The notes beneath the pieces are model-generated. The model made no database searches and had not been told where the DNA came from. It worked only from the letters and a program-made list of their open reading frames with translations. Below, one piece after another: positions 20,137-64,000 of a stretch of DNA of 64,000 nt. Position numbers and translations under genes: made by a program. The stretch comes from Paragordius varius (taxonomy: Eukaryota; Animalia; Nematomorpha), in assembly GCA_964247055.1 (NCBI GenBank), contig OZ176054.1, positions 5,704,001-5,768,000 of the forward strand, in the 5' to 3' direction. Numbering within the stretch: position 1 is the stretch's first letter; each line of letters opens with the position of its first letter.

Positions 20137-23028
20137 ATGGCTCTTTCTAAAACAAATACGTACAATCGTTTAAATTGGGAAGATGCCGAATTTCCTATCT
20201 TATGCCAAACTTGTTTGGGTGATAACCCTTATCTACGCATGATGAAAGATAAATATGGTCAAGAATGTAAAATTTGTGAACGGCCATTCACTGTATTTAG
20301 GTGGTGTCCAGGTACTCACATGAGATACAAGAAAACTGAGATATGTCAAACTTGTTGCAAGATTAAGAATATCTGTCAAACCTGTTTATTGGATCTGGAA
20401 TACGGTTTATTTTATAGTTTTATTTTTTAGGTCTGCCCGTGCAAGTTAGAGATGAAGCCTTAAATGTCAAAGATGACCTACCACGCTTCTCTGTAAACAA
20501 AGAATACTATGTACAGAATAAAGAAAAGGAGGTAATATATATATAAATTAATTATATTTGAAATTTGTTTTTACATTAACTATTTTTTTATTTCCAATAG
20601 CTTTCTGATGCGGTAAATCCATCTGCTAAACTCCAACAATCGAATGAAATGCTTATGAAACTTGCAAGGACAGCTCCTTACTATAAGAGAAATTTGCCCC
20701 ATATATGTTCGTTTTGGGTAAAAGGCGAATGTAAACGTGGGGAAGAATGTCCTTACAGGTAACCAAATATGTTACCAAATCTAAAAAAACGGAATATACA
20801 TTTATATTTTTCTTTTTTTATTATAAAAATTAAATAAGCCATGTAATATACGAAATTTATTTAACTTGTTAATCATTGTATTTGTTAATTATTAAGAATA
20901 TATAATGGAATTTTTAGCCCCTTTTGATTATTTTGAGGATATAATTTTTTGGAAATTATAGAGTAGATAGTTTTTAAATTATAGGTCGTTTTTTTACTTA
21001 ATGTTATATTTTCAATTTTTTTATCATATTAAATCTTATATTAAATTTTCTTGATAAACCGCTATTTATTAAAATAATTAAAAAAAAATTTGTTTGTAAA
21101 AACTGTTTGACTTTATATTTGGCAGTTTTTTTAATGCTGTTTATAACTTTTTTAATTATTTTTTGTTAGTTAGTAGACAAGTCTCTAAGTACAACTCTTA
21201 CATTTATACATCGGCAAAGTAGAATGATTAAAAATATATTTTTACCTTTAATCAAAAAATTAATTTTTTAAAGACATGAAAAACCATCAGATCCAGACGA
21301 TCCCTTGACTGATCAAAATATCCGGGATCGTTATTATGGCGTCAATGATCCAGTCGCTGAGAAATTATTGAGACGAGCATCAGAAATGCCGAAATTGGAA
21401 CCACCGGATGATAGAACAATCACAACATTGTACGTTGGTAATTTAGGTGAAGGACGCATAACGGAAAAAGATTTGAGGTATATTTCCAGTTTCATCGACA
21501 CACAAAATTTTTGGTCTTTTTTATTTAAACTTATTTAGTTTTGCGCATATTTGGACATACATGCTAATAATTTAGTTTTTTTCGGACAAATTGAATTACA
21601 GCTAGGTAAAAGCTTTTTGAAGCCAAAAAAGGTTTACAGCTAATTTTGCATTTTTTGCCGATTTGATGGTTGCGCTTTTTTACAAAAACTACCTTGCTAT
21701 TATAAAAAAACCGGTTTTTGGAAATATGTATATAGTGTATGTTTTGTTATGATCCATTATAACGATTAAGATTAAAGTTACGTTTTATTTAATATAAAAT
21801 GTGATTACACATTTTTTTTCTATTTGTTAGAAATTATTTTTATCAATTTGGTGAAATTCGTTCCGTTTCAATTGTGTCTAAACAACAATGCGCATTCATA
21901 CAATACACTACACGGGCAGCTGCGGAAAATGCTGCAAATCAGTGTTACAATAAGGTTATTCTTGGTGGACGTCGGTATGATTATAAAAATTACATTAAAA
22001 ATTTTAAACTTTTTATACCCTTGAAATTATTTTATTTTGCTGTTTGATAACTTTTATATGCATTGAAAAAATAATAATTTTGATTATCTATGAAAGTATC
22101 AAATAATTTTTTAACATATATGTATTAGCTCGTTAATATAAAAAAATACTCATATTTCTTAAGGTTGGTGCTAAGATGGGGAAAATCACAAGGTCAAATT
22201 GGTAAAAGTGTCAGCCAAGATTACAATTCTCTTCCACCTGTTCCGGGATTACCACCTTGTATTATAATTATTATTTTACTTTTGTTTTTAAAATTAATTT
22301 ATAATTTTTATTGGTCATTTATATTTAAGGCTATAAGTATCTAAGTATCTTTAAAATATTAAAACTCTGTAACTCAATAATTGCAACGCTAGAAAACATA
22401 TATGTTTTATTATAATTTGTTTAAGTAATGATAAAATAATTTTTAGATGTTTTCGTTTATTTATTTAAAAAACATGTTAAACGGTTTCATATTCTTGGGT
22501 AAATTAAAAAAAGACTAAGGAATAAAAGGAACAAATAATTATTATTATTTGAAATTCTATCCTAAAGGTCTGAAAAAATTTTTATCCATTAAAACACATT
22601 TTGGATTTATCTTGTAACTTAATTAATTTAAGCCATATGTATTTATATATTCAACCAATTTTCATAACCTGAAAAAATTTTGATATAATGTTTTGCAAAT
22701 ATAGGCAGTCAGTACATAAAAATTGATTATTGGCAAAGACCACGATTTCTTATCATAGTGTTTAATTTAAAAGAATTTTAGAACAGATAATGCAAATTCC
22801 CTTATAAATTTAACAAAAAACATGTATAAACTATATATATATATTATTATTAATGATTTAGCTTTAAATGATCCAAATATGTTTTTACCGCCTCCCCCGA
22901 TGTTTGTATCTACGGGAAAACGTGAAAGTGACCAAATTGGAGATCAGAATAAAAAACCAAAAGTTATTCATTATCCATCCCAGGATCCCGCAAGAGAAGG
23001 GAGCACTTACTCTTTATCTGAAAAATGA
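20137..23028 (+). CDS. RBM22: Pre-mRNA splicing factor RBM22 (Slt11/Cwc2 family; zinc-binding N-terminus, CCCH finger, RRM)
   Basis: Exons 20137-20404, 20431-20531, 20601-20758, 21274-21477, 21831-21974, 22164-22258, 22862-23028. [35 protein letters not shown]; [29 protein letters not shown]; [12 protein letters not shown]; C-terminal IHYPSQDP. Confidence 0.96.
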
Positions 23029-32032: not shown

Positions 32033-35028
32033 TGCTTTTAATCGAGTGGGAAAGGTACGGTATACCTACCCATCTCTTATCGATCTTTTTTACCAAAAAC
32101 ATTGATTTTATACCTTCTCCGAATATTAGAAATAGTTAGATTCTATTCCTTACATATCCATAACATATTTCCTATTCACATTCTCCCATTCTAAGCACAT
32201 TCTGCTAATGTTGAAATCACGTAATCTCAGCACCGCATCGCCACATGGAACTTACGTGGAGCCTACAACAATCACAAACTAGATATTGTCGTTAACGAAA
32301 TGACTAAGCATAAAATTGACATACTAGGAATTTCAGAATCACACATTCCCTCTACCGGAACTTTAGAATTTGACAATCATATTTTGTATTATTCCGCCAC
32401 GACTCGTCAAAATACAACGGTGTCGGCATAATAATGAACAAAAAACTAGCTAACTTATCGGACATTTTTAATCCAATCAATGATCGTATTATCGCAATCC
32501 GCATACAAACAACCCCTCAACCCATTACTATCCTCCAAATTTACGCACCTACATCCTCTTACAGCGATGACGACTGTGAAAAATTTTATAGCGATCTCGA
32601 CTTGGCGATTTTCCAAATTTCAAAAAAGGATATCATATTTATCTTAGGCGACTTCAACTCAATCATCGGAATAGACAAAACACCTCCTATGACGGGCGTC
32701 ATGGGCTTGGGCATAAAAAATGAGAGAGGAGACAGATTGATTGAATTTTGTGCTAACCATCGTTTCTTAGTCGCAAACAGCTTTTTTAAACAGCCCAAAC
32801 GACGTCTATACACATGGCGTTCCCCGTGTCAAAGATACCGTAACCAAATTGACTTCATATTAGGTATGGTAAAATACAAAAGTTCATTTCATAATGTCAA
32901 ATGCCTACCAGGATCGGATTGCTACAGCGACCACAACCTATTGATCGCTAAACTCCGCATTAAATTACAACTTCCTAAAACATCCAAACCCACAAGAACA
33001 AGATTAGATTATAATACAATCGACGACAAGTTTAGCACCGCTTTATCAAATCGTTTCGATTGTCTTGATCATAATTCCGAAAACTATCAAGATATAAACT
33101 TCTTTTGGAACGATACATATACAATCTGCCGAGACACAGCTGACGAATTCATTCGGCCTCTCAAACGCAATAAACAAAAAATAAAATTGTCAACCAAAAG
33201 TCTCGAGATCGCAGAAAAACGTAAAGAATCCAAAATCAAATGCAAATGGGATGAATACAAACAACTAAACAGTGAATTTCAGAAGAGTGCAAGAGAGGAC
33301 ACAAATAAGTATTATGACCAACTATGTGAAAAATTAGAAACAGACGCCAAAAATAACCAAAACCTTTTTGCCCATGCAAACAATATTATTCCACACAAAA
33401 AAGTTTTTTATAAGGGACCTATGAGAAACGACAACAACTCAATCGTCACTGAAAAAGACGAAATTCACAAACTATGGCATAAACACATAAACAAACTATA
33501 CAATGTAAATAACCCCCCGACTATTAACGAACTTACTCAACAAAAAGAACCACCTATTATGAAAGAAGAAGTGGAACTCGCGATAAAACACTCTAGCACC
33601 AGCATATCAGAGAGCCACAGAGACATCCCTACTAAAATAATAAAATATATTCCAATCGATATACTCACCAAATTATTTCGAACCATATTTGAGATGGAAA
33701 AAATTCCTGAGGATTGGTGCACATCCATTATGATTCCGATTTTAAAAAAGGTAATCCAGAACTGTGCGACAACTATCGCACCATAGCGCTCATAAACCAG
33801 GTGTCCAAAGTTTTTCTAAAAATAATACAGTTTCGTCTAAATTCCATTCTTGACCCCGAGATAATCACGATTCAGGCTGGTTTACGAAAAGGTAGAGGAT
33901 GCCGAGATATGATATGTAATATGAGGTGGATAATCGAGAAACACATCGAATTTAACAAAGAATTGCATATGTGCTTTGTCGATTTTTCCAAAGATTTGAT
34001 TCCATCCATCATAATAAACTACGGAAAGCTCTAACATCCTATTTTCAATTTATTCAAATTCCACGGCTGTAATATCTACACCTCACGGTATATCTGACTC
34101 ATGTAAGGTACAAGTCGGCCTCCGTCAAGGATGCGTTTTATCACCAATTCTTTTTAACGCATACCTGGAGTGCATTATAAGAAATATCCCACAAACTTAC
34201 GGCATCAACGTAGGTGGGAACCTACTTACTACCGTTCACTACGCGGATGATACAGTCTTATTCGCAGACAGTGTAGACACATTATCGCAAGCTTTGCAAG
34301 TGTTTACAACTGAATGCATTAAATTTGGATTATACATCAATTTCAAAAAAACAAAAGTCATGCAAATAAATCTGGCTCAAACCAATCCAATAATCCTCAA
34401 CGGCAACCAGATCGAAACAGTTAGCAGTTACACGTACTTAGGTAACATTATTAATAATGAGAACAACTCTACGCCTGAAATAAAGCGAAGAATTGCTATT
34501 GCTAAAGCAGTAACTTTTAAATATAACAGGATTTGGATGTCACATGACATTAAACTACAAACCAAAATCAGATTAATCAAAGCTACAGTTTTCCCCACAT
34601 TCATGTATGGGGGGGGGGGGGGGGGGGGGGAAAGCTGGACACTGAAAAAATATGACGAACGTCTAAAAAACTCTTTCGAATTATAAGTTTGGAGGAAACT
34701 TCTTCAAAGAAAATGGATAACAAAGTTTCAAACACCATCATTCTAAATAAAATTAACCCAGAAATGTCACTTCTAGGCAGCTTAACACGGCAAAAACTCT
34801 CCTTCTTCGGGCACATTATGAGATCCAACTCACTTGAAAAATCAGTGAGCTGGGGAAAGTGAGTGGTGCCCGAAAAAGAGGGAGAAGACGAACTCGTTGG
34901 ATGGATAACATCCTCAAAGAAACCAACCAATCATTATCCGAACTAAACACCAAAACCGGAAATCGCAGTGAATGGAGAAGCTTTATTTTCAATGTTGCAG
35001 TTTGGAATCGACCTTAGCAAACAACAAC
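32033..35028 (+). mobile_element. RTE-type non-LTR retrotransposon (APE endonuclease + reverse transcriptase), near full length with frameshifts
   Basis: IATWNLRG, ILGDFN, NQIDFIL and SDHN (APE); NYRTIAL, QAGLRKGRG, GLRQG and YADD (RT); (CAA)n tail; possible 11-bp TSD AATAAAAACAA (32022-32032, 35029-35039). ORF pieces 32434-33786, 33714-34034, 34294-34686. Confidence 0.93.
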
Positions 35029-38355: not shown

Positions 38356-41300
38356 TCACTACCCCCTTCTAACGAAAGCGGGCAGGTTTCTGACGACTTC
38401 TTGTCGGGTACCGTCGTTCCTGTATTTTTATGGGGGAGCTGGTTGTAGCATATTCCTGGGTATTATCATTATTTGAACTTTTGGCTGTCGGGGTAATCGG
38501 TTCGGTTTCGTCACTTGGGTTAATCGTGCTGTTTGGTTGCGTTTCGGCAATTGTTCCATCGTCCTTTGCCGTGGTTACATCATCCTCACTTGTGTTGCTG
38601 GAAGTGGTGGTTTGTTGTTGTGGCTGGTGTACTATTTGATCGGCGTGCTTTCTCACGAGTATCTCCCGGTCTTTGTCCCATACCTTGTATGACAATAAAC
38701 CTGTACGGTCCGTGATCTCTCCGGCGTGCCACCCTGGACTTAGTTCATTTTTCATTACCGGGTCATTAATGGTAAACTGCCGGCGGGGGGCCGGTGCAAA
38801 CAATCTTGCCCTACTATTTAACCAGGTTAAGGGGGTATGGGGTGTACGCTTGTACATTAATTGGGCCGGGATCTCTTTAGTTGTCTAGTATATAAAGTTT
38901 CTATACGCCCATAATCTAGTGTTAAACGCGTCGTGGGTGGATATTGCATTATATTTAATTCTTTTGTATTTATTTTTTATTGTACCTACTAACCTTTCTA
39001 CCATCCCATTTCTCTTAGGATGATAGGGGGTAACCTTAATAGGTTTCACCCCTAACGTACTTAAGGTTGACGTGAAGTACCCATTGTTGAAATACGAAGC
39101 GTTATCGCTAACGATATCTCTTGCAAAGCCAGATCTTGCAAACGTGTCTTCTACTTTATGGATTATATTCGCTGCGGTTACCTTTTTCAAAATAAGCCCT
39201 TTTGCCCATTTTGAGGCATTATCAATGCTCAACAACCAATAATAACCGTCTAACGGTCCGGCTATATCAGTATGCAAACGCTCCCACACAGCAACATTAT
39301 GACCCCACTGATACGTGAAATTCTGAATAACATTCGGCCTACTACGTTGGCACGATTCGCACTGGCTACTGGCTTTTACCAGGTCATTTTTTAATTTGGC
39401 CAATAACACGTAAATCTGGCCATCGCTTTCATGGTTACGTTGTTATGACCGCTGTGTAGATATCTGACCACCTCTTTTTGAAAGGGCTTCGGAATTATAA
39501 TCCGATCATTTAAACTTAATAAGCCATATTGATATGCCAACTCATCTTTACGGTTTACAAACTCTAATTCTGGAGAACTCCAGTCATGGTTGTTTAACGC
39601 TTTTATTACTTTTTGTAATACTGGATCTAATGCGGTTTCTTTTCGAATTTTATCTCTGCTTAACCGCACGTTATGACAATTCAAAAATGATATCTGGTAA
39701 CCGCATAATCTTCATCATAGGCAACGATCTCGTCAATCGACCATCTCGATAAATAATCAGCTCTATTTTGAGCCCCCTTTTGATGACTTATTTCAAAGTG
39801 GTATTTATTTATCATATTAATCCATCTTAGTACTTTAGCATTATGTATTTCTTTTAAATTTCGATCTCTAACTATTAACTTTACTAAGGGTAAATGGTCA
39901 GTTAATATTATAAATTTTCTACCAGAAACTGCGAAACTTTTTTAACGCAATCAATATTGCTTTTAATTCCTTCTCGATAGTGGAATAATTCCTTTCGGCG
40001 TTGATACACATTGTGAGGCACACGCTATCGGTATCCTTTTTCTATTAACCTCATGACTTAAAATACACCCGAATCCTAAATCAGACGCATCAGTTTCTAT
40101 TATCAATTTCCTATTCGGATTATATGATGTTAAAAACACTTTAAATTCTTAGCTGCCAACCAGCTTTTCTCATGTTTCTCGGTCCAAGACAATCTCGTAT
40201 TTTTACTAGTTAATTCATGTAAGGGACCGACTATCATTTGTAATTTTGGTATAAAGCGTTCATGAAACGTCAAAAAACCTAACCGGCCTTTTTGGCTCCT
40301 TAATTGCCTTGATTTTGCTTTTACATGGGCTTATACCCTTTTTTGATATTTCAAACCCTAAATATTTTACTGATTCTGCACCTATCATTATTTTGCCAAT
40401 TTGAATCCGGCTTTATCAAAACGACTTAATACGTTATTTTAAAGGTTAATATGCTCATTTTCCGTCCTACCAGTCACTAGGACCTCATCTAAATATACGC
40501 AAGTTCCCGGACTTTCAGCCAGCACCTGTTCCATCACCCGTTGAAAGATGATGGGTGCGATGGCCAGTCCAAACGGCATGCGTTTGTATCTAAAAAAACC
40601 TTTATGTGTTGATATAGTTAACAAATCTTGACACTCCTCTGCCACTGGCATTTGGAGGTAAGCATCTTTTAAATCAATTTTTCTGAATGTGATACCTTCG
40701 CCTATTTTGGACACCAACTCATGAAACGTGGGGATTATATGAGAGTCTTCTTGCAACCACTTATTAATCGTTATCCGAAAATCACTGCATATTCTTAATT
40801 CGCCATTAGGTTTAAGTACATTAACCGTTGGCGTGGCCCATGTCACAGGTGTAATGTTAGGATCAACCGGTTCTAGGATGCCTAACTTTTCTAGCCTCGT
40901 CAGCTCCTTCTCCACCTTTTCTCTTAATAGAAAAGGCACCCTGCGACATGGCCATGCTTTCGGGATCGAATTCTCTGCAATGCGAATTTTTACAGGGTCT
41001 TTATAACACCCTAACTTATTTTCGAATAAGTTTTTAAAATTTTCGCAAATCTTATTTAATTTAATTAATTAATTTCTGTGGCATTTCAATCTGGAATTTA
41101 GCCATTCAGTCCAGTCCAGTCCACACAGTGGTGCCATCCCCATCGTTTTGCTCAGGACACATATGTCCCCGATCATTTATTTGCCTTTTATCTGGACGTT
41201 GACGCTTGCTGTTCCCATCATTGGCACTGTGTTATTGTATGATTCTGGTGGTGTCGTTGATATCAGAACTGGTATCAATAAAGTCTTTTTTCAAACCGTT

Positions 41301-44431: not shown

Positions 44432-46471
44432 ATGCTTGAATCTCATCGGAATTCTATTGCTTCTAAATCTGACTATATTGGTTTTGATGGCAAAAAAACT
44501 ATTCGATTTTCCAATCACGATGAAAAAATATCCAAAGAAACCGATTCTATATCCACATCTTCGTCATCATCCGATTCAACTATTCCTCCTGCACCAGATG
44601 GAGGTTGGGGTTGGGTAATTGTATTTTCCTCATTTATGATCCATTTTATAGTGGATGGAATCGGTTTTGCATTCGGTGTTATATATGTATCATTTTTGGA
44701 TTATTTCCAAACGAGCAAAAGTAAAACTGCGTTCATTGTATCTCTCTACTATGCCATGCCTTTGCTTGCGGGACCAATGGCTAGCATATTAGTTGATAAT
44801 TATGGATGTCGTAAAATGACTATGATTGGTGGCTTTATATCATTTCTCGGCTTTTTTACCAGCATTTTTATTCACCGCATTGAAGCTTTATATGTTACCA
44901 TGGGTATAATTACCGGACTTGGATTATCTTTAGTCAATGTTGCATCGATTGTCATAGTCGCGTTTTATTTTGATTCAAAGCGAGCCTTTGCCACAGGAAT
45001 TTCCACATCGGGATCAGGTGTTGGTGCAACAGTCATCGGAGCTTGTGTCGAATTATTACTGCAGCGATATGGTTGGCGTGGAACAATACTTTTGTTTTCA
45101 GGGTTATTTCTAAATATTATTGCTCTTGGTGCTCTTATGAGGCCTGTCGAATGGCCAGAAAGTTTAGCCACGGCTCGTCGAAGTCGAAAATACATGGAAA
45201 AACTAGTCAATTTTCAACAACTTAGCTCTAAACATCCTGGTAGAAAAGTTGCTTTACTTACGGGAGATGTTATTAACTTAGACGAATCTAGACTCAATGT
45301 TGACAATAAATCTTTAAATTTATCTTATGATGGTCATAATGAAACATCTGATTCTGACACGGAAAAGAAAGCTCATTCAACTTTAGATATTCCTACCTAT
45401 CTTACGAAAAATCCTATGTTGAGCACAGAAGCTTATGAAGCCCTCCACAAAGATTACAATGTCGATAATTTAGTTCAATTATTACCCCTTATTCAAAACG
45501 GTGTTTTACTCAATGATATGATATGTAACAATTATGAATTTCAAACCAAAGCTACATGTTTCAAAGATCATCCGCATTTCCATGATATTTGGACTGAACA
45601 TGTTGATAAAATGAGAAAAGCGGAACGATATCGGTTTTTAAGGCTCAATCGCTCAAATATTACTAGCAAAGGGTGTATGCTTAATACTCCAAAATATGCC
45701 ATAAAAGCTTCAAGTTGTCCAGACGTGTACACTAGTACACTTCAACGTGACGAAGATGCGTACACTTTCAACGAGCTAATGAAAGAATTATGGGATACAA
45801 TTAAATCTATGTGTGACTTCGATTTATTAAAAGATATTACATATTTACTCTTTTTCCTATCCAATTTTATGTTGTGTCTGTGTGATGATATCCCACACTT
45901 GTATGTTGTCGACCTTGCTATCAATACTGGAATAGATCCGGTTAAAGCTGGTTTCCTTCTTTCCATAATGGGCTTCCTCAGTACAATCGGTCAAATTATA
46001 TTTGGTTATTTGGCTGACAGGCCTAATATGAACACTATATACCTTTACACCATAGCTACGGCCGGGTGTGGACTTAGTTGTTTTGGTTTTACATTCATTC
46101 AAAGCTACATTGGTTTGATGTTTTTGTGTGCCACCTATGGGTTACTCATAAGTGCCAATTATAGTTTAACGTCCATCATACTCGTCGATCTTATGGGTTT
46201 GGAAGAATTTACTTCGAGTTATGGATTAATTTTAACAGCACAAGGGGTAGGGAGTTTAGCTGGGCCTGCCATAGGTGGTTTTCTTGGAGATTTAACTCAT
46301 TCTTACAATTACACTTTTTATTTTGCTGGTGTGCTAATTTTAACATCCGGGCTGATTATGTTAATTGAACCGTTAGTAAAACGTTGGCGAAAACAAAGAA
46401 AACGTCATCCTATATTCACAAAATTAACGATATCCGACAATATCCCAAAAACTAATTTACCTATGTTATAA
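44432..46471 (+). CDS. Monocarboxylate transporter-like protein (SLC16/MFS), 679 aa, intronless
   Basis: Single ORF; SLC16 signature PPAPDGGWGW, GPMASILVDNYGCR, multiple hydrophobic TM segments around a large central loop, GQIIFGYLAD. Confidence 0.93.
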   Translation: MLESHRNSIASKSDYIGFDGKKTIRFSNHDEKISKETDSISTSSSSSDSTIPPAPDGGWGWVIVFSSFMIHFIVDGIGFAFGVIYVSFLDYFQTSKSKTAFIVSLYYAMPLLAGPMASILVDNYGCRKMTMIGGFISFLGFFTSIFIHRIEALYVTMGIITGLGLSLVNVASIVIVAFYFDSKRAFATGISTSGSGVGATVIGACVELLLQRYGWRGTILLFSGLFLNIIALGALMRPVEWPESLATARRSRKYMEKLVNFQQLSSKHPGRKVALLTGDVINLDESRLNVDNKSLNLSYDGHNETSDSDTEKKAHSTLDIPTYLTKNPMLSTEAYEALHKDYNVDNLVQLLPLIQNGVLLNDMICNNYEFQTKATCFKDHPHFHDIWTEHVDKMRKAERYRFLRLNRSNITSKGCMLNTPKYAIKASSCPDVYTSTLQRDEDAYTFNELMKELWDTIKSMCDFDLLKDITYLLFFLSNFMLCLCDDIPHLYVVDLAINTGIDPVKAGFLLSIMGFLSTIGQIIFGYLADRPNMNTIYLYTIATAGCGLSCFGFTFIQSYIGLMFLCATYGLLISANYSLTSIILVDLMGLEEFTSSYGLILTAQGVGSLAGPAIGGFLGDLTHSYNYTFYFAGVLILTSGLIMLIEPLVKRWRKQRKRHPIFTKLTISDNIPKTNLPML

Positions 46472-46719
46472 TGAAATAATTTTTTATTTTTTTAATCTTG
46501 TCTCCTACCTGTATAGTTAATATACAAAATTATACGTTCCAACCGATGTGATATTACATTTTTTGCACATATATATTTACGCATAAAAAATAATAAATAT
46601 TTTTATAGCCGTGAGTTATATCATTTTACAAAAAAATTCATATCATATTATATAGATGCAATGACAATTCTTACGACCAATGTGCGAAATTAAATCTATC
46701 AACAATTCTAACATTACAC

Positions 46720-48075
46720 ATGAGAAACAAGGTTCAATCAACGTATGACAAGATCATTAAACATTGGATACTTATTCTGTTATGTTTTTTCAGCTTTTTG
46801 ATTGTGGATGGGATTGGATTTTCCCTAAGTCTGTTTTTTGTCGCTTTTACATCCACGTTTGACACATCGTCGAAAAGTTTAATATCTTGGATATTTTCTA
46901 TTCATTTTGCTATGACTCTGATCTCAGGTCCGATGGCCAGTTTACTAGTCAACAAATACGGGTGTGGAAGATCTAATATGATTGGTGGATTACTTACATT
47001 TCTGGGGTTTTTTATTGGATCATTTGCCCGTGCAATATGGTTATTAATCTTGAGTGTGGGAATGTTATCAGGGTTTGGTGTTGCAATCGTTTATGTTACT
47101 TGCTACACCATAATTATGAATCAATATGTGGATACGAAAGAATTAGTTACTGGTATATTTTCGTGTGGCTCTGGTATTGGAGCCCTAATCATTGGACCTC
47201 TAACTGAATTTTTAATCAATAGATATAACTGGCCTGGTGCCTTATTAATACTATCGGGTCTTTTTATGCAAATTTTATTTTTCGGATTAGCAATGCAAAT
47301 TTATGCAAAATTACATGGAATTAAACCCGTGCTCAAGTGTGAACATCCAACTTTGACATCGTGCACATCTCTACCACAACTTAATGGTGTCAAAAATTTT
47401 GGTCCGATAATGTACACATCTTTACCATATCTAAATCGCTCCTCTAAAACACCGGGTAATCCATCATTGAAACAGACTTACTGGAAAAATTTAAATTATC
47501 AAATATTTTTGCTATCAAATTTTCTTTTGTATGCGAGCGGAGACACTCCATGTATATTTACGATAGAACGTTCTATCAAGCTCAATATTATACAAGATAA
47601 TGGATTCGTTGTTTCTTTGTTAGGAATTTCCAACACCGTTGGGCACATATTTTTTGGATTTTTAGCACATGTCATGGTACGAAAGTTAGGAACTAAGGGA
47701 AATTTTGTTATATATGGAACGGGTATAATCATTGCTGGTATTGCTACCGTATTCGTCCCTCATATGTACAATGCATACCAAATTTATTTTTTCATTATCG
47801 TTTTGGGATTTTTTATCAGTGCCAATTATACCCTGACACCAATTATTACAGCAGATATAGTTGATTCCGATTGCTTTTCCTACGCCCTGGGTTATGTATT
47901 TACAGCCCAGGGATTAGGAGCTTTGATCGGAGCTCCTATCGGGGGTTTGTTCATTGATCATTTCAAAAACTACTACCTTTGCTTTTATTTAGCGGGAATA
48001 TTCATTTGCATATCGGGTCTTATGTTATTTCTCAATATTATCACTTTTACAAAAACTAATCGTGGCAAAAAGTAA
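46720..48075 (+). CDS. Second SLC16/MCT-like protein, 451 aa, intronless tandem paralog
   Basis: Single ORF; LIVDGIGF, GPMASLLVNKYGCGR, ISANYTLTPII and AQGLGALIGAPIGG all align with the upstream paralog. Confidence 0.9.
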   Translation: MRNKVQSTYDKIIKHWILILLCFFSFLIVDGIGFSLSLFFVAFTSTFDTSSKSLISWIFSIHFAMTLISGPMASLLVNKYGCGRSNMIGGLLTFLGFFIGSFARAIWLLILSVGMLSGFGVAIVYVTCYTIIMNQYVDTKELVTGIFSCGSGIGALIIGPLTEFLINRYNWPGALLILSGLFMQILFFGLAMQIYAKLHGIKPVLKCEHPTLTSCTSLPQLNGVKNFGPIMYTSLPYLNRSSKTPGNPSLKQTYWKNLNYQIFLLSNFLLYASGDTPCIFTIERSIKLNIIQDNGFVVSLLGISNTVGHIFFGFLAHVMVRKLGTKGNFVIYGTGIIIAGIATVFVPHMYNAYQIYFFIIVLGFFISANYTLTPIITADIVDSDCFSYALGYVFTAQGLGALIGAPIGGLFIDHFKNYYLCFYLAGIFICISGLMLFLNIITFTKTNRGKK

Positions 48076-50989: not shown

Positions 50990-53520
50990 ATATTATTCCA
51001 CGAAACCAAGAAACAATGCCTTAACAAATCTAGCAAGTAATTATAGCAATTAGCTACACTAAATGTCCGTGGTTTAAATGATATAAAGCCAACCTTCTAA
51101 CAAATTCCATGGCAATAGATATATCTCAATACTTAAACTTAGTAAGACCCATTGGAAAGATCAAGGTACCTATGAACATAATAACTTTGTTCTTCACCAT
51201 TCAGGTAACGCGGACGCCAAGAAAAATCGCACAGGTTTCTTAATGACCCAGGAATTTGCCAAAAACGCGGTATACAAACCGCATTCCGCCCAAATTTTAT
51301 TAATCCGCCTCCCTACAAAACCAATCGATATCACTATCATACAGGCCCACGCCCCTACAAGCACATCAGACGAAGATACTATATTAAAATTTTACTCAAG
51401 TCAAAAAAAAGACTTTCTGATTATATTGGGAGATGTCAAATTGGGATATCCACAATACCAAGGGTATGGGGTGGTAAAAAACTGGGCGAGCTTAACGCTA
51501 GGGGAAATATTAAACTCCTACTTTTCTCAACAAACTCTATACCTGGATTAGCCCAGATCAAAAGACAAGAAACCACATCGATTATATTATTGGTGAACAT
51601 AAATGGAAAAGTTCGTTTGCAAATTTCAAAACATTTCAAGGTGCTGATTGCGGCTCGAATCACAACCTCCTGAATGCCAAAACTAAACTAATTAACAATA
51701 ATAACTATGATTCCAAAATGCCTGAACCCTTTATAATTACAAATAGTTTTGCACACCGGAATCTATAAACGAATAGAACACCAATGACTGCTGGAATTAT
51801 ATAAAAACTAAAATTGACACTATTTCACGAAAACATCTAATTAAGAAATCAAAGAAAAAGAGACTTATCTTTCATCAGCTGCGCTCGATATTGCCGAAAA
51901 AAGACGTATAGCCAAAAACAATCCCAATCAAAAGGAGGTTTTATAACAAATTAAATAAATTTGCTAACCAACAAAAAAATTGATATAAACGCATATTACG
52001 ATAATCTTTGCGATGAAATTGAATATAATGAAAAAGATATAAACATTTTCACCTCAGTCAAACCAACGGCAACAAAAAAATATATTTGTAAAGGCCCTAT
52101 ACTTGATTCCAATGGATAGAAATTACTGAAAAGGATAATATAATTAACAGATGAAAACAATATTCCACAGATCTGTACATGGACTCATACGCATTCTCCC
52201 CAAAACCTCCCCATAGATAAACCACCCATCCTAGAAAGTAAGGCCCTAAATGCAATCAAATCCCTTCCTCGCAACAAAGCCTATACTACATTACTATCCA
52301 AATAAAACTTGCAATAGCTTACGAAAAAAATTTTCAATCAGACATCTGGCCAAACAATTGGTCTAAATCTCTATTTATACCGATTCACAAAAAAGGCAAC
52401 CCTAAAATATGCAACACCTACCGAACAATAGCGCTTATATTGCAAGCTTCAAAAATATTATTTATTATATTTTATTATAGATTATTATCACAAAATCCGT
52501 TTTCGGAAGCGAAGAGGCTGCAGAGACCATATCTACAACCGCAGGGTTATCATGGAAAAATATATTGAACACAGCAAACCAATTTATCTCTTTTTTATTG
52601 ATTAAACAAAAGCCTTTGAAAAGCTTATTCACAACACACTATCGGAAGCCTTGGAAAAAATTGGCAAACACCTGGTTTCATTTAAATAATCTTTATACAG
52701 CAACAGTGAGGCATATATTCGCACACGGTACCTCTGATTCGTTTCGCCCGTCAAGGGTGCATCCTTTCACCACCATTATATAATATATACACCGAACATA
52801 TCTGGTCCATGTTGGATACTCATAATCATATCGGTGTAAAACTAGGCGGAGAAATAATTAATAACCTTGCTGATACACAATACGTTTAATAACAGCTCCT
52901 GGAAAAATCACATCTTGAGAGCCAATCTCATAGCCTCGAATTAACTTGGTAAAAACCAAAGTCATATCAAAAGACGCCACATGCCTAATCAAAATGGGCG
53001 AACACTGTTTAGAAACACTAGACAATTATATATATTTAGGAGTGGAAATATAATACAACACCTGAAATTAAAGGAAGACTAGCCATAGCCAGAGAGAAAA
53101 TGAAATCATATCGCAAGATATGATCTTTATGAAAAATAAGAAAAACTACCAAAATTATATTAAATACCATAATACCCAATCGCAACCTATGGCTGTGAAA
53201 GGGTTTGCAAAAACTTTGACCAAAAAGTTATACAAGCTTTTGAGCAAACCTGTTGGAGAATACTTGGTAAAAAATGGATGGTAAAACTTAATGAATGGAT
53301 CTGCACAATCAACCCTGAGACCACATCACTTCAAATGATAACAAAACGGAGATTAGGCTACTTTGGCCACGTCATCCGCAACAACAAATTGGAGAAAACA
53401 ATGCTGGGCCTAATTAAAGGTAAATGTAAAAGAGGCAGACCCAGAAAAATATTGTCAAAACAATTAACAGATGATACCCACCTTACAATCCCTAACCTGA
53501 TCAATTTATCCTCAGACTGA
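50990..53520 (+). mobile_element. Second, more decayed RTE-type LINE
   Basis: ATLNVRG, IIQAHAPTSTSDE, YRTIALI and RRLGYFGHVIR...KRGRPRK fragments; many stops and deletions. Boundaries approximate. Confidence 0.85.
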
Positions 53521-53751: not shown

Positions 53752-54905
53752 TCATATATCTGGTATTTCAAATATTAAAATATTTTCATAATAATTTAAT
53801 AATTTATCTAAAAGAATGATTGGAACATTGGCTAAATGTGATATTTCTTGCAAACAATAGGTACCCTCCATGTATTTCAACAAATTATTAAGGCGTTTGT
53901 CTATTTTATTGTATTGTTTCTGACTCTGAGTTAAATCACTGTTAATAATAATAGGAATTTTTGATAGAGGAACAATAAAATCTTCATATAGCAAATGATT
54001 TATTATAATTTCATCGAGATCCTATAATTTGAGAGAAATTAAACTTTTAAAGTCTGTGACTTATTGAACAATAATGAATGATCTGAAAGCCACTTTTGAA
54101 TAAACTTATTAAGGGATATACGGGGGTTGATGATAAAAGTTTTATCCCCTGTTGAGACGAGTTTACAGTCAAGTAAATGATTATAGCAGAAATTGGCTTG
54201 TACCTAAGCATAATTTAAATTTTACTTGAAAAAGGGGAATGTCGCATATCTTACCCCATTGTGAAAATGTATCCAAATTAATAGCAGATATTTGATTGGA
54301 ATTCTCTTTAAATAATAGAGTATGAAATGGTTTCATCTTTATTTTAACTTAATTTACTTTCAATGTTGGTTGAGAATCGAAAATAATATTATATTTGTTT
54401 ATGATAATTTCAAACTTATCTTTGAAAACGTTTGCAAATAACTGCAATAAACTACCAATAATATCAGCTACTTCAAGATTGTTTGTGTTATTTATAAAAT
54501 TTATGTAATGGTCAATTTTATATTTTATTTTGGATGGACATATATGCTAATATATATTTAATTAATACCCAAAAACCAAAAATTATTCGATAAGTGGTAT
54601 TAGAATTTAATTTTTTGTTTATCAGTTTGGAGAGCAAATATGCTTTGTTAATTTGTAATATGAATTCATTGTCAAAATTATTTGTGAACAGGGATAATAA
54701 ATAATCATCTGGGGATTCATTAGTTATACTAATTAAAATATTTTATGTTATAAACTTGGAATTCGGTTCCAAATTTTGAGATATTTTGCTAAAATTAAAC
54801 ACTTTAAATTAGGATCATAAAACCTAAATCAAAAGAATTTGGGGGATATTTGAAAACAATCTTATCGCCCGTGCTCCCCGAACAGGTTAGAAGCAGGCCA
54901 AACAT
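53752..54905 (-). CDS. NPRL3: GATOR1 subunit NPRL3-like protein, about 338 aa, 7 exons
   Basis: Model exons 54905-54824, 54801-54756, 54728-54569, 54546-54358, 54336-54226, 54203-54045, 54021-53752 (1017 nt, open to TGA). MFGLLLTCSGSTGDKIVFKYP, MKPFHTLLF and LKYMEGTYCLQEI match the NPRL3 N-terminus, the RPYHALLL motif and the C-terminal FxGxHHLEEI region. Introns 1-2 have alternative solutions. Confidence 0.75.
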
Positions 54906-54958: not shown

Positions 54959-57900
54959 ATGGATCTACAAAACAAAGGAGATATCGACGAACCATTGCAA
55001 TCATGGACCGACACTATAAAAGAACCACAATTAGAATATGATGATAATGAATTTAATTTACTAGACTTAAGTGGGGAAAGTAATCTTTTTTAAATTATAT
55101 GCAAATTTTTATTTTAGATATTGATTCTCTGGTCATTGAAGATGAAGTATTAGATAAAGGGTCTGACGTTGCTTTTTTCGGCGAAAATTATGACGAATTG
55201 TTAGATCAGATTATACAACCAAATGATGAAGCGTCTCTTTTTAGTGATATAAAAAAATACAACATTGTTACTGTTTCAGGTACACATGTTTAATAAATTA
55301 AGGTGATGATGCATACGGCCGCAAAATTATATCTATAAATGCGTGCAATCTCCCGGACAAACAGAAAATTAATTACAATACTTTTTTACAGTATTTTTTA
55401 TTTTATATTTGTTTAATACTATAGAAAAATTAGTTTATTTAGTTTGTTTACGTTTGATTCACGTATTAGCCTTTTGATATATCAATAACTATTAGAAGCT
55501 GCTTATTTTTTATTTTGTTGATTACGAGTCATTTTATAATCTGTTTTAATCGAACCGTAAAATTTTGATCGAACCATAAATATAGATATAAAAATTGTAA
55601 AAAAATCCGCATCTCAAACTCTTTACGCCACCATTTTATATCTATCCATTTTATAAAATGGCCAATGCAACAGTCAAACAAATTATGTATGGTAGGAAAA
55701 TGTAAATAATTAACTTTAAAAAGCTTTCAGGCTGCATTTTATCACCAAAAACATGATAGATTTTGATAATAGCTGTTTTTTTATCGTGTTTTGGAGCTGT
55801 CCCAATTTATACTCCAGAAGTCACAAAACTGTAAATAACCTTTTTTATTTAATACAACAATGTTTGATAATTAAATTTTAACTAAACTTTTATAAACAGT
55901 AGTTTATTTTCAAAATTGAGCTCTGGTACATAAAACTACCCCAATATGCACACTAGGACAAAAATGTGAATAGTTCATGCAGTGTCAAATACATTTTTAT
56001 TAGTAATATAAAAAAATTTAATTGGTTTAAAATTTTTATACAAATAAAAACTTGAATTAATGCATAAACGCAAAATCGCCGCCGCGATAAAAATGATAAA
56101 TGTTACCGATCCAAATAAATTGCTTTATATTAAAATTAAGTTAACTATACTTAGGCCCAAAATATAAATGTTTTTTTACGTTAAAGTATTGTAAAACACT
56201 CCATATAAATCGATGCTTAAATATTTCTGAAATACTTTATACTAAACAATTTTTTTAACATCGCTTTTTTAGATAAAATTATAGGTTTTTTTCAACGCAA
56301 ATTGGTCCTAATTATACTTATAATTCTATTTGGGTTATTTTATTATGTGCTTTAAAACCCGTTAATCTCTTTCGAATATAATCAATATTTAATTTATACC
56401 TCTTGAACATTGGTATGGTATAATTACGGATACTTTCTAGCGAATATGGCTTGAATAAAATTTTATACCTATCTAAATGCTAAAAAACCAATATTATAAA
56501 TATTTTAAACAAACAGGTACATACTACATACCCTGGACGCTTTTGTTGAATTAGATTATGTCATAGTATATTTTCATCATGGCCTAACTTCCAAAAATAA
56601 ACCCAGTATTGCATGGCTTTGGCAAGCTTATAAGATATTTGATCGCAAGTTTACATTGAAATTTTTTAAATAACCCTCCTACTATAGATATAAGAAAAAT
56701 TTGAAACAGATATATTTAGTCCATCCCACAAACTTGATCAAAGCTATATACCAAATATTTAAATCAACTCTAAGGTATCCACATGGATTTGTATTATAAT
56801 TTATAGTCATAAATTTGGAAACAAAATTACATACGTCAATTATCTAATCGAATTGCAAAAGCACATGTCATTGGACCAAATATACATTCCTCAATTTGTT
56901 TTAGAGTATTTCCACAAATAATTTACAATTTTAAATATTGCCAAACTTTTATTACATATACAATGCACTTCAATTGTTATATCCAATGAAAAAAACTCTC
57001 TATGCTATATAGTTAATAATTACAGATAATCCATATTTTTTTTAGATATGATAACAAATTATACTTAAGGGACAAAGAGAAGCTAACATCCATTATTCCT
57101 AATTTACCTTCCTTAGAAAAAAATGCAACTCCTATATTTGGTATTCCTCTCGATAAGTAGGACCCATTTTTAAATTACCCTTTAGTTATGATAAAATACC
57201 ACCCATTTTAGAAGATATCATTGAAAAACTCTTGAGAAACGATAAAAGTAACAATTTTGCATATACATACCTAACTTTTTAAAGCTTTACAAATTCCAGG
57301 ATTATTTCGGAGATGCCCAAACGCGCAAAAGCTACATTCCGTCAAACAAGCATTAAATTTAGGTTTTATAAAACATTTAACCATCTAAAGGACACACTTT
57401 ACAGAATGATCCTGATATCGATGCTCATACTTGGGCAACCCTTTTAAAATTTTATTTTAAAAGTCTTCCGGTTTGCATTATGGGTTCCGAAAACTACGAT
57501 ATCATAGTACAAAAGGGTATACTAGTTTGTTTGAATAAAACTTTGAAACCAAGTTGATATAGCTTTTTACCTGATTATGTTATAAAGTTTATGGATAAGC
57601 GCATAAAAGATTATTGTAGGGGCTTTCTGACTAAATATAAATAGCTGTAGTAAGAAAATATTGGGGTAATAAATTTTTTTTGGAAAACAAAAGATTACAC
57701 ATTAATGCATGGTCCCCAATTTTCAACAAAATTTTATTTAAGACTGATTAATTTAAAATATTGTAACATTCAACTATGATTAAATGTTTGATAATCAAAT
57801 ATTTTTTATATAGACATTGACGACCAATCAAGCACGTTTTGCCGGCAAATAGTGAATGAACTTCCAAACATTAATTATCAAACCTTGAAATATTTAATTA

Positions 57901-58272
57901 GTTTTCTCAAAGAGGTATGTATTTGATATCCAAAATACTATAATGTCTATCTAATTTTTTAGTCATAATTTATGGCGGAATCATTAAGATCACATTATTT
58001 TTTATCACCTTAAATTTTATAAATTACTTACCGTAATATCAAAATCGTATTTTTTAAAAATTTGTGTTTTTCCACTAAAATATTTTTTTTCATAGGTAAC
58101 CAACCATGAAACACATAATCACATGAATGCAAAAAATTTATCTATTGTATTCGGTCCCAATCTGATTTGGTCTAATTCACAGCAAAATACAATTGAATCC
58201 ATACATCGAATAAATAACTTTGTTGAGATATTAATTACTGATTATGACGTTATATTTGAAAATGATTCATAA
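54959..58272 (+). CDS. ARHGAP1: Rho GTPase-activating protein of the ARHGAP1/ARHGAP8 (RhoGAP68F) family; BCH/CRAL-TRIO + RhoGAP domains
   Basis: Exons 54959-55079, 55118-55279, 55303-55390, 56517-56648, 56688-56774, 56807-56905, 57046-57156, 57186-57247, 57285-57362, 57391-57516, 57814-57914, 58096-58272. [39 protein letters not shown] (arginine finger), [18 protein letters not shown]1 versus ARHGAP8 not resolvable. Confidence 0.92.
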
Positions 58273-58408: not shown

Positions 58409-61400
58409 CTATAATATTTGGTTTACTATAAAAGATAAATTGCCCAAGTATCTATCATACAAAAAATATTTTTTGTCAACATATAAATATGTTATAGGTT
58501 CTGGTAATTTCTCAACAAAACATTCAGCCGTTTTAACGCAGTAGATGGGTAGTTTTTCATAATGATTTTCTGTTTCTATCTTCTAAGTATCATATATAAA
58601 ATAATTGTGGGTAACAAACCTCCAATCGTAACGTAATTGTAGGCGTTTTTGCAAAAATCTTTCTCTTCGTTTTTGGATGCTCAATCGTATAATTTGCAGT
58701 GTTTTTATCTATTTTCAATTCAAAATTCCATGTGTATATGTGTTCTAAAATAAGTATGTCATCTCTCTGGTCAATGTTTGTCTCGAAATATTTCAAAACA
58801 AAATTATAATCATTCAATTCATAACCATATTTTCTAACATTAAAAAATTATAAAATACTTGCACACATCTAATTTAAATAATTTCAAAAATGCTTCGGAG
58901 TTATTAAAAATTGACAAATCCACAGCTGTATTGTATAAATTTGGTTTTTCTATTAAATTGTAGATTTTTTCGGAATTCATTAATTGCTTCCAAATTCTTT
59001 TTTTGTCACTACATATCTGCAATAAATATAATTATTTATATTAAATTTTAATAAAAAAATATATTTCTAACCAATTACACAAAGCAATTCTCGATGTTTA
59101 ATTATTACCCATTCTCATATCATATTGTAATTGTCAAGTTTTATATGGATTGAGTCAAAAACTTATTTGAGATTAAAGAAAATATTAAAATATAAATATA
59201 ACGTGGTATCTAATGGGTAGCAAAATTAATGCTATTCATTGAATTACCTGTGATAGTTTTTTCATAAATAATATGTCAAAACAGATATGCCAAACGGGCA
59301 TATATTTTAAATTTATGATCAAATCGTATGATCCTATCTTACAAACTTTAAATGGTCATTTACGAATGTAGTTAATGTATTTGGAAAAACTTTATAAATA
59401 TGCTAGGATTAAAACAAGCAATTATAACATTAATAAGTAACGGTATTATTTCACATTATTTTTAAAGCCAGTTTGATCTCTCAAAAGGTCATTCTGATTT
59501 AATTTTATGAGCCAAAAAGCGAAGATATTTTAGGATCACATATTGACAAAAACAATTAAATGAGCTTAAGACCCGGAGAATTCAGCGGCTATGCAATAAA
59601 GTTTTATCCGCAAAATATATAAATTTTGGGTTTTAAACAAAACGAACTGGAAGCAAATATAATCTTTTCCCACTAATTATAAAATTAATTTGCATTTGTC
59701 AGGTTTAAAATAAAATTAATTAAATAATTATTTAATTATATATTACTTTTTCATCCGTATTCAATGTAGGTATAATTTCGCCATAAATTCTATCATATTC
59801 TCTTTTAAGATAATTATTGCTTAAAGAACATTCTTTATTTTCATTTTTGTCCAGTTTTTCTTTGTTTTGTATATAAGACTAAATAAATTAGGTTTAAGTA
59901 ACAACTTGACATGATTTATGAAATGTATCATCACCATCTTTTTCAGTTAATGATTGTGACGATGGTAATTGAGAGAAGATATCCAAAAACGATAATGTTT
60001 CATTCACTGATAACAAAAGGGAAGAATTATCAGGAATGCGTAGCTCTTTAGGATCCCAGGTCTGCTTTTTTAGCCAAACACCCAATTCATCACAATTTTT
60101 TATTTCATTCAACACTTTATGGTATTTCTTAGTATTGACAAAATTATCATTTACTATACATCTTAAAATCTATAAAAAAATAATAATCATATAATAACTT
60201 TGAGATCTAATTGATCTTCTATATCATTCGAATATGTTAGAGTTAAAGATTCAATTAGATTATTACTTTTTTCGTAAGTATCATTATTATTTAGTAAATT
60301 GAGTGAACATTCATAATGATCCACTGTAAAAAGATATTTATCGGTCCATGACTAAAGTTTAACATTGTAATATAAATGTATTTACGTTGAGATATTGAGA
60401 TCGCAAGACCAACTGCACATGAAATAATGTTAATTTTTTCTGCAAATCAAATATCTTGGCATTAATTAAAGGACGTTTTCCCAAAATATTTAACAATTTA
60501 TTACAAAGAGTATTGTAAACACCGTTTATCTCATTTACATTCAACATCATAATTTTAGTGTCCAGTAAAGGGATTATGAATTCAGTTTCTTTTATGCTTT
60601 CATAAGAATTGACAATTATGAATAGTTTTGTACCAACGTTTTTTAACTTTTTAAACTATAAATGGTCCTATAAATTACATTTATATACCGAATTAATGAG
60701 ATGTGTAACCATTATAGAGTCAAATTTGTGAATAAGCAATACCATCCATACATCCATAGACGAGTTATCATTAAGAAATATAAGCAAAGATTCAAATGTA
60801 CTCAATATTTCAAAATTTTCATCACTTATCCATATTGTACTTTTATCCTTCATGGTATTATATGGTAGGGTGAGATCAAAATTTTCACGGTCCTCATAAT
60901 TGAGCCATGTTTTTTCAATATTTACGCACAAAGGGTTAAATATAATGCATATCTTTTCAGCAAAAGATATAATAGTTGGCGGCACTGTAACTGGTTGTGG
61001 GATTGAAAAATGTTTTTCAAAATTTTTAATAATTTCGTCATGATAAAATGCCGTTGAATGATTTAAAAGGGAAAATTTATCAATCGTTTCCTGGCATAGT
61101 TTATTAACAAATTTCTATAAATATATGGTTATTTAAATACAAATTCATCGGGCAATTCCATATATTTATTGGACAACAAAAGAATCACCATAATGATACC
61201 AAATATATCATAATCAAATAAATTTGATTTTAACGTAGTGTACAATGAACAAATTAAATTCTTCAAGATTAAATAATCTTCAATGGTTTGCTAAATTTTT
61301 TTATCAAACAAAAAAATTACCTGGGAAAAATATTCCATAAAAAATTTGATGAAAAATGATTTGTCAAACTGGTAAAATGGGTTAGATAATCGTTGCAGAA

Positions 61401-64000
61401 TGGATATGATCTCCAAAGTAAATTGACAAAACTTTTCCAATTTACCAGAAAAATTTTTTATGGCAATCGGATTTTGAATTTGTTCCCTCAAAACTACCAG
61501 ATCCTTTTCAACTTTTCGAAAATCATCGAAAATTAAATTGATATTTTGCGGAGCGCAAGATTTAATAAGTGAAATAAATAACGTTTTTTGTCGATTTAAT
61601 TTGGCATTTAGCACATTTGGATTTTGTGGAAATAATATATACTGTAAAATATAAAATTAAGCAAACTTCTTTAATAAGGTATGTGAGGGTATCTTCAATC
61701 TTAAAATTAAGGTTTAGAATAAGAGAATTTTGGCGCATGTTAGAATTGTTGTTAGATTTAAGTATTATAAGATTTGTAGATTGTTTAATACTTTGGCTAT
61801 AATTCAGCTCTTTTATAATTGACACTAAACATTATACTAAATTAGGTAAACCTTTTTGTTCGTAAACATCTTGGATGAGATCCATTATCCATGGGGTTAG
61901 TTCTGTCACATTATACAATACTAAACATTTATTTTGTTGCAAGCAACAATTCGCAATATGTCTGTTGAAATTCTTTATATAAATAAATATAAAAAAATTA
62001 AAAAATTCTGGTTCAACGCAAAATATAAGAAAGAAGCCCGTCACATATAACTCTAGCAGGTTAAAGAATGTCATTTCATTAAATTGGAATAATTTTCGAT
62101 CCTTAATGTTTATTTGATATTTTAATCCGGCATTACTGTTCCTTATTTATTAATTACATAATTTTTATGCGGAAACAGTATATATGGCTTACTACTGACC
62201 CACGTTGTATTTGATTTCCCTAATATACCTACTTTTTGACCTAGGATTAACCAAAACCGTTTGGATACGGTTCTGCAAAATTAATGCGGCACCATAAAGT
62301 TCTAATAACAAAAAATTATTTTTGCGAAAAATTTTTTTGATTCCGTCCCTATTTCAGTGTTTTTGGAAAAATAATAATTGCGCTTTTCATTTTTTTTTGA
62401 AATGATACTTATTTAATTTTAAAGGTATATATTTTGATAAATTATGAATAAATAACTTCAAAAATATTACATTTAAGCTACCCATATTTATAAGTATGCT
62501 ACTTTTCACTGTAAATACTTAAATATATGAGCAATATAAATATAAAGTTAACGTTGCAATTAAAATTCAAAAATGTTGAAGAATCACAAAATTACTTTTA
62601 ACCGTTTTCGGATTTTTTATCACAAAACAGGTGGTTCCGAACCCAGTTCGAATCCCTGTTTTATTTATTTTTATTTAAAACCGGATTTTTAGACGTGTAA
62701 AAAATTACCAATTTTCGTTACATTTTTCTTTTAAAAAATGTAAAAACATACTTGATGATCAAGCAATGCATATGCATTTGGATCGGAAGCAAAAAAGTTG
62801 AACCATACATAATTGTAATCCTCAAAAGTTAAAATATGTGGGACAGTTTTAATCAAAAATAAATAAATCATATTTATGGGGTTAATGCTTATTAATTTTT
62901 CTATTTGGCCCATATCATCTTGTTCTATCAACATGTATCGATATAAATCAATCATTCCTGCCAAATTAAAAAGTCACAATACCAAATTTCTCAAGATTCA
63001 CATTTTTTTCTGACAACAAATCCGCTATAATAGTTATCAAATCTTTAATGGTATCATAGGGGACTACAGTTTCTGTTGTTTCCAAACTTTCTTCCTAAAA
63101 TATAAAATAAATTTCAAAACTTTTTTCCATTTATCTAATTCATTGTTAAATACGGGTATGAGCTCATTCAAAAGTGAAGAGTACGATTCCATATCCTTCA
63201 TAGACGTGTCTAATTGTGTTGTATCCTTTTCCAGTTCAATAATTTTTTCCAACAGTTCATCTCGTTTTGCTAACGTATCATTTAGTTCGGATTCACATTG
63301 TTTTATACTTTCATCCGTTTTATTCTTTTTTCTATTTGGAAATAAAAATTTGATAAAAGAATATGATTATTTAAAGATAAATAAATGACTTACGTATTTA
63401 AGGTGTCTAGCTTATTTGTAAGTGGGGCCATTTCTTGACGCATTTTAGCATACGTATGAATAGTTTTAACCCAAAAAGCCAATGAAGTCACCACAGATGA
63501 AGCATGATGAGCAACCTATATGATAATACATTTTTTCATCTTACGTTTTCTTGAAATGATTTACCATGTTCTTTCAAATGTTTTTCAAAATCTTCTATAT
63601 TTTTTCGTCTTATTTTGAGGACATCAAAATTAAGAATATCCTGTTTAAAGGCCTTTTTCGTTAGCCACCTAGAATAATAGCGTATTATCGGATAAAGTTA
63701 GGTCACACGCAATTTTAATTCAAATTTCGTATATAATAAAACAAACTTTCGCATGTTAATCCATGAAGTATCCTTTACACCAAGCAATTTAGCGATCCCT
63801 TCAATAATATCCCGCACCACTTCAGGCGGATTTTTTAGACTCTTAATTTCATTTAAGTCGTCCTCTTTCAAATTGACAATTTTGCGCTTGGCTTCTTCAA
63901 TTAAGGGTAAAACCTTTTCTAACTCTACATTTAGTAACTGCGTTTGTTCATCCAATATTTTTATGAAATCGTTTTGTTGAGATTTTAATGTTTCTAAATG
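58409..64000 (-). CDS. DYNC2H1: Cytoplasmic dynein-2 heavy chain (IFT dynein), C-terminal part from the stalk/MTBD to the stop; 5' part outside the window
   Basis: LNEIKSLKNPPEVVRDIIEGIAKLLGVKDTSW and ASSVVTSLAFWVK match the dynein-2 microtubule-binding stalk; LSNPFYQFDKSFFIKFF matches the NNMYRFSL region; putative TAG at 58411-58409 after LPIY...GNLSFIV. Exons 3' of the stalk only partly resolved. Confidence 0.82.

Follow-up and report, generated by a model that had tools for sequence, protein, structure and literature searches.

A candidate NPRL3 gene of a probable horsehair-worm lineage, probably interrupted by six major-class introns of 21–27 nt

NPRL3 is a nutrient-sensing gene whose product is a subunit of GATOR1. 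At the locus described here, an NPRL3-like reading frame becomes continuous when six segments of 21–27 nt are removed, which raises the question of whether these are real introns and, if so, how a spliceosome could recognise them. Introns shorter than about 30 nt were formerly considered to be missing from animals. The locus lies on the minus strand of a 64,000-nt window, which is the whole stretch of DNA that was analysed. An earlier note on this DNA had proposed six GT-AG segments, and rechecking in the letters reproduced their coordinates, lengths and donor hexamers, with GT and AG ends in all six. Exon 1 (54824–54905, 82 nt) starts with the ATG at 54905 and is followed by intron 1 (54802–54823, 22 nt, phase 1), which contains a CTAAT branch-like motif with its A at −8. 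Exon 2 (54756–54801, 46 nt) is without homology support of its own, and intron 2 (54729–54755, 27 nt, phase 2) introduces an in-frame stop when retained. The model continues with exon 3 (54569–54728, 160 nt), intron 3 (54547–54568, 22 nt), exon 4 (54358–54546, 189 nt), intron 4 (54337–54357, 21 nt, with an in-frame stop), exon 5 (54226–54336, 111 nt), intron 5 (54204–54225, 22 nt), exon 6 (54045–54203, 159 nt), intron 6 (54022–54044, 23 nt) and exon 7 (53752–54021, 270 nt), which carries the putative NPRL3 C-terminal HTH and the stop codon. Removal of the six segments joins seven frames into a stop-free coding sequence of 1017 nt, that is, 338 aa and TGA. The phases of introns 1–6 are 1, 2, 0, 0, 0 and 0, so introns 3–6 are all in phase 0, as had been claimed. 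Reading through introns 3–6 meets stops, again as claimed, and the same holds for introns 1–2, so that the frame ends early, at aa 34, 47, 113, 162, 211 or 251, respectively, whenever one intron is retained. The GC content of the intron interiors is 9% vs 27.5% in the exons. RNA coverage of the gene was zero in the RNA-like runs X6 and X8, and the runs that contain the stretch (X3 and X4) are DNA.

The joined frame was compared with two shuffled nulls. When up to six GT-AG introns of 20–28 nt were allowed per shuffle, the longest coding sequence in 1000 dinucleotide shuffles had a mean of 155 nt and a maximum of 444 nt, compared with the 1017 nt observed. With exons 1 and 7 fixed and the middle 802 nt shuffled, bridging was possible in none of 3000 trials. 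Moreover, a purpose-written gene finder, which started from a flat intron-length prior, was trained on about 270 kb with the NPRL3-like gene masked; the training DNA was 200 kb taken from contig C1, what remained of the window, and four loci. It learnt an intron-length peak at 21–29 nt, a dip at 30–39 nt and many long introns, and once the short-length peak had been learnt it reproduced all seven exons exactly. Under a flat length prior, or with a floor of at least 24 nt, it gave a four-exon parse with longer introns, and most of the gene was lost at the 24-nt floor.

The DNA of a second individual bears on the same frames. A contig of run X4 spans 54054–54817 with 13 substitutions and zero gaps. 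Introns 2–5 are contained in gap-free contigs of runs X3 and X4, which come from two studies, and adjoining X4 pieces cover intron 1; intron 6 has read depth in its bins and is shown by none of the listed pieces. Of the 13 coding differences listed, 8 are synonymous when read in the model frames, the stop-codon change included (P = 0.001–0.009 for 8 or more), as are 5 of 9 in exons 3–6 alone (P = 0.02–0.06), and the five listed replacements (I>N, L>I, I>T, Y>F and T>S) create no stop. Two silent differences fall in exon 1, exon 3 has two silent and two conservative ones, and silent differences occur in each of exons 3, 4, 5 and 6. The stop codon is TGA in the assembly and TAA in run X4. All AG ends are kept among the three intronic differences listed, and in intron 2, where two bases differ near the 3′ end, the TAG is kept. 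The ungapped segments in the second individual, together with the 8 silent differences among the 13, thus argue that the locus is neither an assembly error nor a pseudogene.

Regarding the identity of the gene, exon 7 matches Pfam PF24064 (HTH_NPRL3) with E = 8.6e-5 and 22.8 bits, under the cut-off of 27.2, and it is the genome's best match to this family, with no other match of note. Exon 1 has a weak match to residues 10–27 of human NPRL3 in PDB (E = 1.6). The N-terminal motif and the C-terminal HTH stand in the order expected for NPRL3, both end-domain matches being weak, and the Atlas neighbours of exon 7, which serve as a lead only, belong to NPRL2/NPRL3 clusters (0.83–0.86). NPRL2 was found as a separate gene (G000:C6:8467252, E = 1.2e-14), so the candidate is distinct from it. 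This NPRL2 gene (L028) opens with predicted introns of 29 nt (1472–1500) and 26 nt (1756–1781), for the second of which a 20-nt intron that keeps the frame is a possible alternative. PF03666, which covers the longin and central domains of NPRL3, did not match the locus, exon-wise searches included; exon-wise searches with exons 2–6 gave no database matches, with exons 3 and 5 blank in PDB, Pfam and Atlas. For exon 7, zero homologues were found among 1.84 billion representatives and zero in a word-index search, and no orthologue was retrieved; the gene adjoining the MFS (monocarboxylate transporter-like) pair of Gordionus, where an NPRL3 orthologue was sought by synteny, is a different gene. 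Exons 3, 5 and 6 presumably resemble motifs of human NPRL3, exon 5 in its first residues, and these resemblances, which for exon 5 were not seen in the exon-wise database searches, were not counted as evidence. Compared with the GATOR1 subunit NPRL3 (PF03666, PF24064; PDB 6CES chain M), the order of motif and HTH is the same and NPRL2 is likewise a separate gene, but the human chain has 569 aa vs 338 aa here, and the matches here remain below Pfam cut-offs. On these sequence comparisons, the gene is the best NPRL3 candidate in the genome.

Introns of this size appear elsewhere in the genome (110.6 Mb in 44 contigs). In the same window, RBM22 provides a homology-fixed control: its intron 1 (20405–20430, plus strand) has 26 nt, exon 1 ends at human residue 90, codon 91 is split and exon 2 resumes at residue 92. 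The RBM22 gene occupies 20137–23028 (plus strand), and its later introns measure 69–603 nt. A 22-nt intron in a ferredoxin gene (L051:4646–4667) is flanked by residues 85 and 87 with exactly one split codon relative to the solved human protein. By homology, RBM22 and ferredoxin thus fix the size class outside NPRL3. Furthermore, in five pairs of Ras-family exons (C3 and C5) the implied gap is about 19–26 nt. In an ab initio sample (200 kb of C1 and the window), about 10% of the predicted introns were shorter than 30 nt, a rough figure because the gene finder joins genes into chains and predicts spurious introns in antisense and transposon frames. Introns of 46–140 nt are common in the predictions for this genome, and others reach more than 1000 nt. 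Micro-introns therefore appear in these predictions as a minority class, roughly a tenth, beside long introns. At the level of sequence, the earlier proposal is supported in these respects: the gene is NPRL3-like, its ultra-short GT-AG introns are genuine, their donors are weak and they leave no space for a pyrimidine tract.

The surroundings of the gene were also inspected. An ARHGAP1-like gene with CRAL-TRIO and RhoGAP domains (54959–58272, plus strand, 447-aa model) stands head-to-head with the NPRL3 candidate, its model introns measuring 38, 23, 1126, 39, 32, 140, 29, 37, 28, 297 and 181 nt. Because only 53 nt separate the two ATGs (54905, minus, and 54959, plus), the two promoters or 5′ UTRs must share sequence with one another or extend into the opposite gene. 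Within the ARHGAP1-like model, the 1126-nt third intron holds a high-copy repeat (about 55600–56000; X4 depth about 100 times that of the flanks), and such an insertion would be one route from a short to a long intron. Beyond it, the minus strand at about 58600–64000 carries the 3′ portion of a dynein heavy chain gene, which is highly divergent, matches a PDB dynein only weakly (E = 0.54) and has ten predicted introns of 25–30 nt. We take its stalk to be dynein-2-like, and it is of interest because cilia genes were reportedly lost in hairworms. Two tandem, intronless MFS genes (monocarboxylate transporter-like; 44432–48075, plus strand) are ordered as in Gordionus. The best match of an MFS gene in the window is to Gordionus sp. 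(315 bits vs 221 for the next), which shares the tandem pair at 69% identity. By this comparison of a single gene pair the nearest relatives are hairworm genes, and the source is probably a nematomorph; a myxozoan or dicyemid source was rejected on this match. An ankyrin gene at about 1280–19810 (minus strand) has introns that are almost all long (68–1102 nt), with a first intron of 40 nt, and within it lies an intronless 337-aa ORF without a Pfam match (5842–6855). The window also contains a broken LTR-type retroelement with RT and integrase pieces (38369–41050, minus strand) and two broken LINE-like elements (32374–35017 and 51087–53517, both plus strand).

By comparing 36 introns of 21–30 nt, mostly predictions, with 24 long introns in the window, the splice signals of the short class could be described. 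In the micro-introns the base at +3 is always A or T, and G at +5 occurs in 3 of 36; the exon base at −2 is A in 27, and that at −1 is A in 16 and G in 15. At the 3′ side, A peaks at −8/−9 and T at −5 and −3. A branch-like YTNA was present in 31 of the 36 compared with 24.4 expected (p = 0.007, weak as it is the best of four patterns tried). On the other hand, the long introns in the window carry stronger donors than the micro-introns, with G at +5 in 9 of 24 vs 3 of 36 (p = 0.009) and A at +3 in 21 of 24 (p = 0.02). The difference in exon −1 A (16/36 vs 5/24) was not significant (p = 0.10). A 'first AG' rule is unsupported, as internal AGs occur no less often downstream of position 20 than upstream of it. 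U12-type identity was considered for the six introns and rejected, since neither a GTATCCTT/ATATCCTT donor nor a TCCTTAAC branch site occurs in any of them. In the splicing machinery, the U2 GUAGUA and U6 ACAGAGA sequences are canonical, and the four best U1 genes divide into two with a canonical 5′ end and two, both full-length (L007 at G000:C6:606254 and L009 at G000:C6:3718553), that carry C9U in the end which reads the donor. The 5′ end is missing from many other copies of U1 and U2; among the U2 variants, L020 and L021 keep GUAGUA but are altered in stem I, and L022 has GUAGAA in the branch-reading region. An SF1 gene is present, as is a U2AF2-like gene in three collinear sub-threshold pieces on C8. 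With these canonical U2 and U6 sequences, two canonical U1 genes, SF1 and U2AF2-like gene, the compensatory change in the machinery for which the earlier note had proposed to look was not borne out. Its suggestion of a specialised, length-defined splicing mode survives in part: length-guided recognition across the intron fits the weaker donors of the micro-introns relative to the long introns; altered machinery is not supported.

The reading that we regard as highly probable from these sequence data is a working NPRL3 gene of a horsehair-worm lineage, of about 338 aa, with six major-class (U2) introns of 21–27 nt. We hypothesize that these introns have shrunk to their present size and that the ordinary U2 spliceosome would recognise each of them as one unit, across the intron, near the size floor. 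The minimal donor with which U1 would pair has A at exon position −2, either A or G at −1, and GT followed by A or T. U2 would use the A that lies about 8–9 nt ahead of the AG within a loosely matching YTNA, with no real pyrimidine tract. The intron may be marked by its very low GC (9% vs 28% in exons) together with a length floor near 21 nt; in the model, AGs that end 18 nt or less from the donor are skipped. The donor-to-branch distance, about 13–15 nt here, exceeds that of Stentor, whose introns have 15–16 nt with 10–11 nt from donor to branch (PMC9505925), so that new chemistry would be unnecessary. As any retained intron leads to a premature stop, nonsense-mediated decay would presumably clear failed splicing.

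It is conceivable, though we consider it unlikely, that, in an otherwise real gene, some of the six segments belong to longer introns of 54–181 nt, which would give a shorter protein and fewer micro-introns. The earlier note had limited longer alternatives to introns 1–2, which was wrong, as introns 3–6 too have stop-free GT-AG alternatives of 54–359 nt. Its statement that the coding sequence needs the six introns was too strong for the same reason, a longer stop-free solution being available at every position; the open coding sequence itself stands. By gene-finder score, intron 4 is tied between 21 nt and a 54-nt alternative ending at 54304 (0.1 nat apart), and the best alternatives of introns 3 (109 nt) and 5 (106 nt) are close, at 2.5 and 1.4 nats worse. 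The flat-prior parse also skips exons, and introns of 46–140 nt are frequent in this genome. On the other hand, what that parse skips consists of long open frames whose GC is exon-like (23–33% vs 9%) and which tile the region far beyond chance in both nulls, and exons 3, 4, 5 and 6 all have silent differences, while a protein of 338 aa is already far below the human chain. For intron 1, an 82-nt intron or a single 115-nt intron in place of introns 1 and 2 scores 6–7 nats worse, and the best alternative of intron 6 is 7.8 nats worse, which makes introns 1+2 and 6 the most clearly separated by score (6–8 nats). It is very likely that most of the six are real micro-introns, and we also favour, with less assurance, all six exactly as modelled.

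A decayed pseudogene, in which frameshifts and stops would fall by chance inside GT-AG segments, could be suspected from a very divergent protein whose homologues were not found and from the decayed LINE just downstream. It is highly improbable in view of the shuffle nulls (0/1000 and 0/3000), the silent-biased differences with a stop-to-stop change (TGA/TAA) and the lack of another PF24064 match of note in the genome. Still less credible are six assembly insertions: the gap-free X4 contig with the segments excludes them for introns 2–5, which X3 also contains, and with intron 1 in X4 pieces the assembly indels that the earlier note had named as a refutation are ruled out for introns 1–5. A specialised mode with variant snRNPs or altered branching factors, for example a C9U U1 that reads donors with A as the last exon base, is doubtful, but deserves more weight than these two. 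C9U occurs in two of the four best U1 genes (L007 and L009), exon −1 A tends in the appropriate direction without reaching significance (16/36 vs 5/24, p = 0.10), and altered Cwc25 and ISY1 ends have been proposed in Stentor (PMC9505925). Against it, neither U2 GUAGUA nor U6 ACAGAGA is changed, the genome has canonical U1 genes as well as SF1 and a U2AF2-like gene, and the 22-nt introns of myxobolids are spliced with conserved U2 and U2AF (PMC13644364). A C9U U1 dedicated to micro-introns is possible but unsupported, and recognition by the ordinary U2 spliceosome remains the preferred reading.

A 2026 survey of 51 genomes reports sub-30-nt animal introns in myxobolids and Dicyema only and predicts more (PMC13644364). 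The precedents named in the earlier note (Paramecium, the chlorarachniophyte nucleomorph and dicyemids) were incomplete, as they did not include the myxobolid myxozoans (PMC13644364). A literature search of incomplete coverage found no published report of sub-30-nt introns in Nematomorpha, and, measured against that survey, the hairworm is probably the third animal lineage with such introns. We lean towards a third independent animal origin, the first in Ecdysozoa, in which one spliceosome would serve two classes: introns of 21–30 nt, marked by how short and AU-rich they are, and ordinary long introns, whose donors are stronger. The C9U U1 may serve the short class. This locus contributes a whole gene with micro-introns only, support for its frames from variation between individuals, and a difference in donor strength between short and long introns. 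If the hairworm case is true, this third origin lies in a repeat-rich genome that keeps long introns, a single spliceosome would allow short introns to be set against long ones, and the close relative Gordionus could serve for testing the minimum length. Gene finders with a minimum of 30–40 nt would break or miss such genes, and thus gene-loss counts for this lineage may be inflated.

Among known systems, the myxobolids (Henneguya, Thelohanellus and Myxobolus) likewise have GT-AG introns of 20–27 nt in a parasitic animal, and share with the present case a donor of about GTa, a weak A stretch before the AG, a conserved U2 branch region and U2AF, here a U2AF2-like gene (PMC13644364). However, the short class is the genome median in myxobolids (22–27 nt; PMC13644364), whereas here it is about 10% of the predicted introns. 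Myxobolid long introns are reported to be without extra signals (PMC13644364), in contrast to the stronger donors of the long introns here, and myxobolids are cnidarians, whereas the lineage here is probably ecdysozoan. Dicyema japonicum resembles the present case as a parasitic animal with sub-30-nt introns and reduced signals, but belongs to another phylum, and its introns are similarly short genome-wide (PMC13644364). Among ciliates, Paramecium has introns of about 25 nt (PMC8997360). The tiny introns of ciliates (PMC8997360, PMC9505925) share with those described here AU-richness, canonical U1, U2 and U6 recognition sequences and a branch A, here a candidate one, a few bases before the AG. 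Ciliates have almost exclusively tiny introns (PMC8997360, PMC9505925), and the branch position is fixed in Stentor (PMC9505925), whereas here lengths run from 21 nt into the 30s and on to kilobases.
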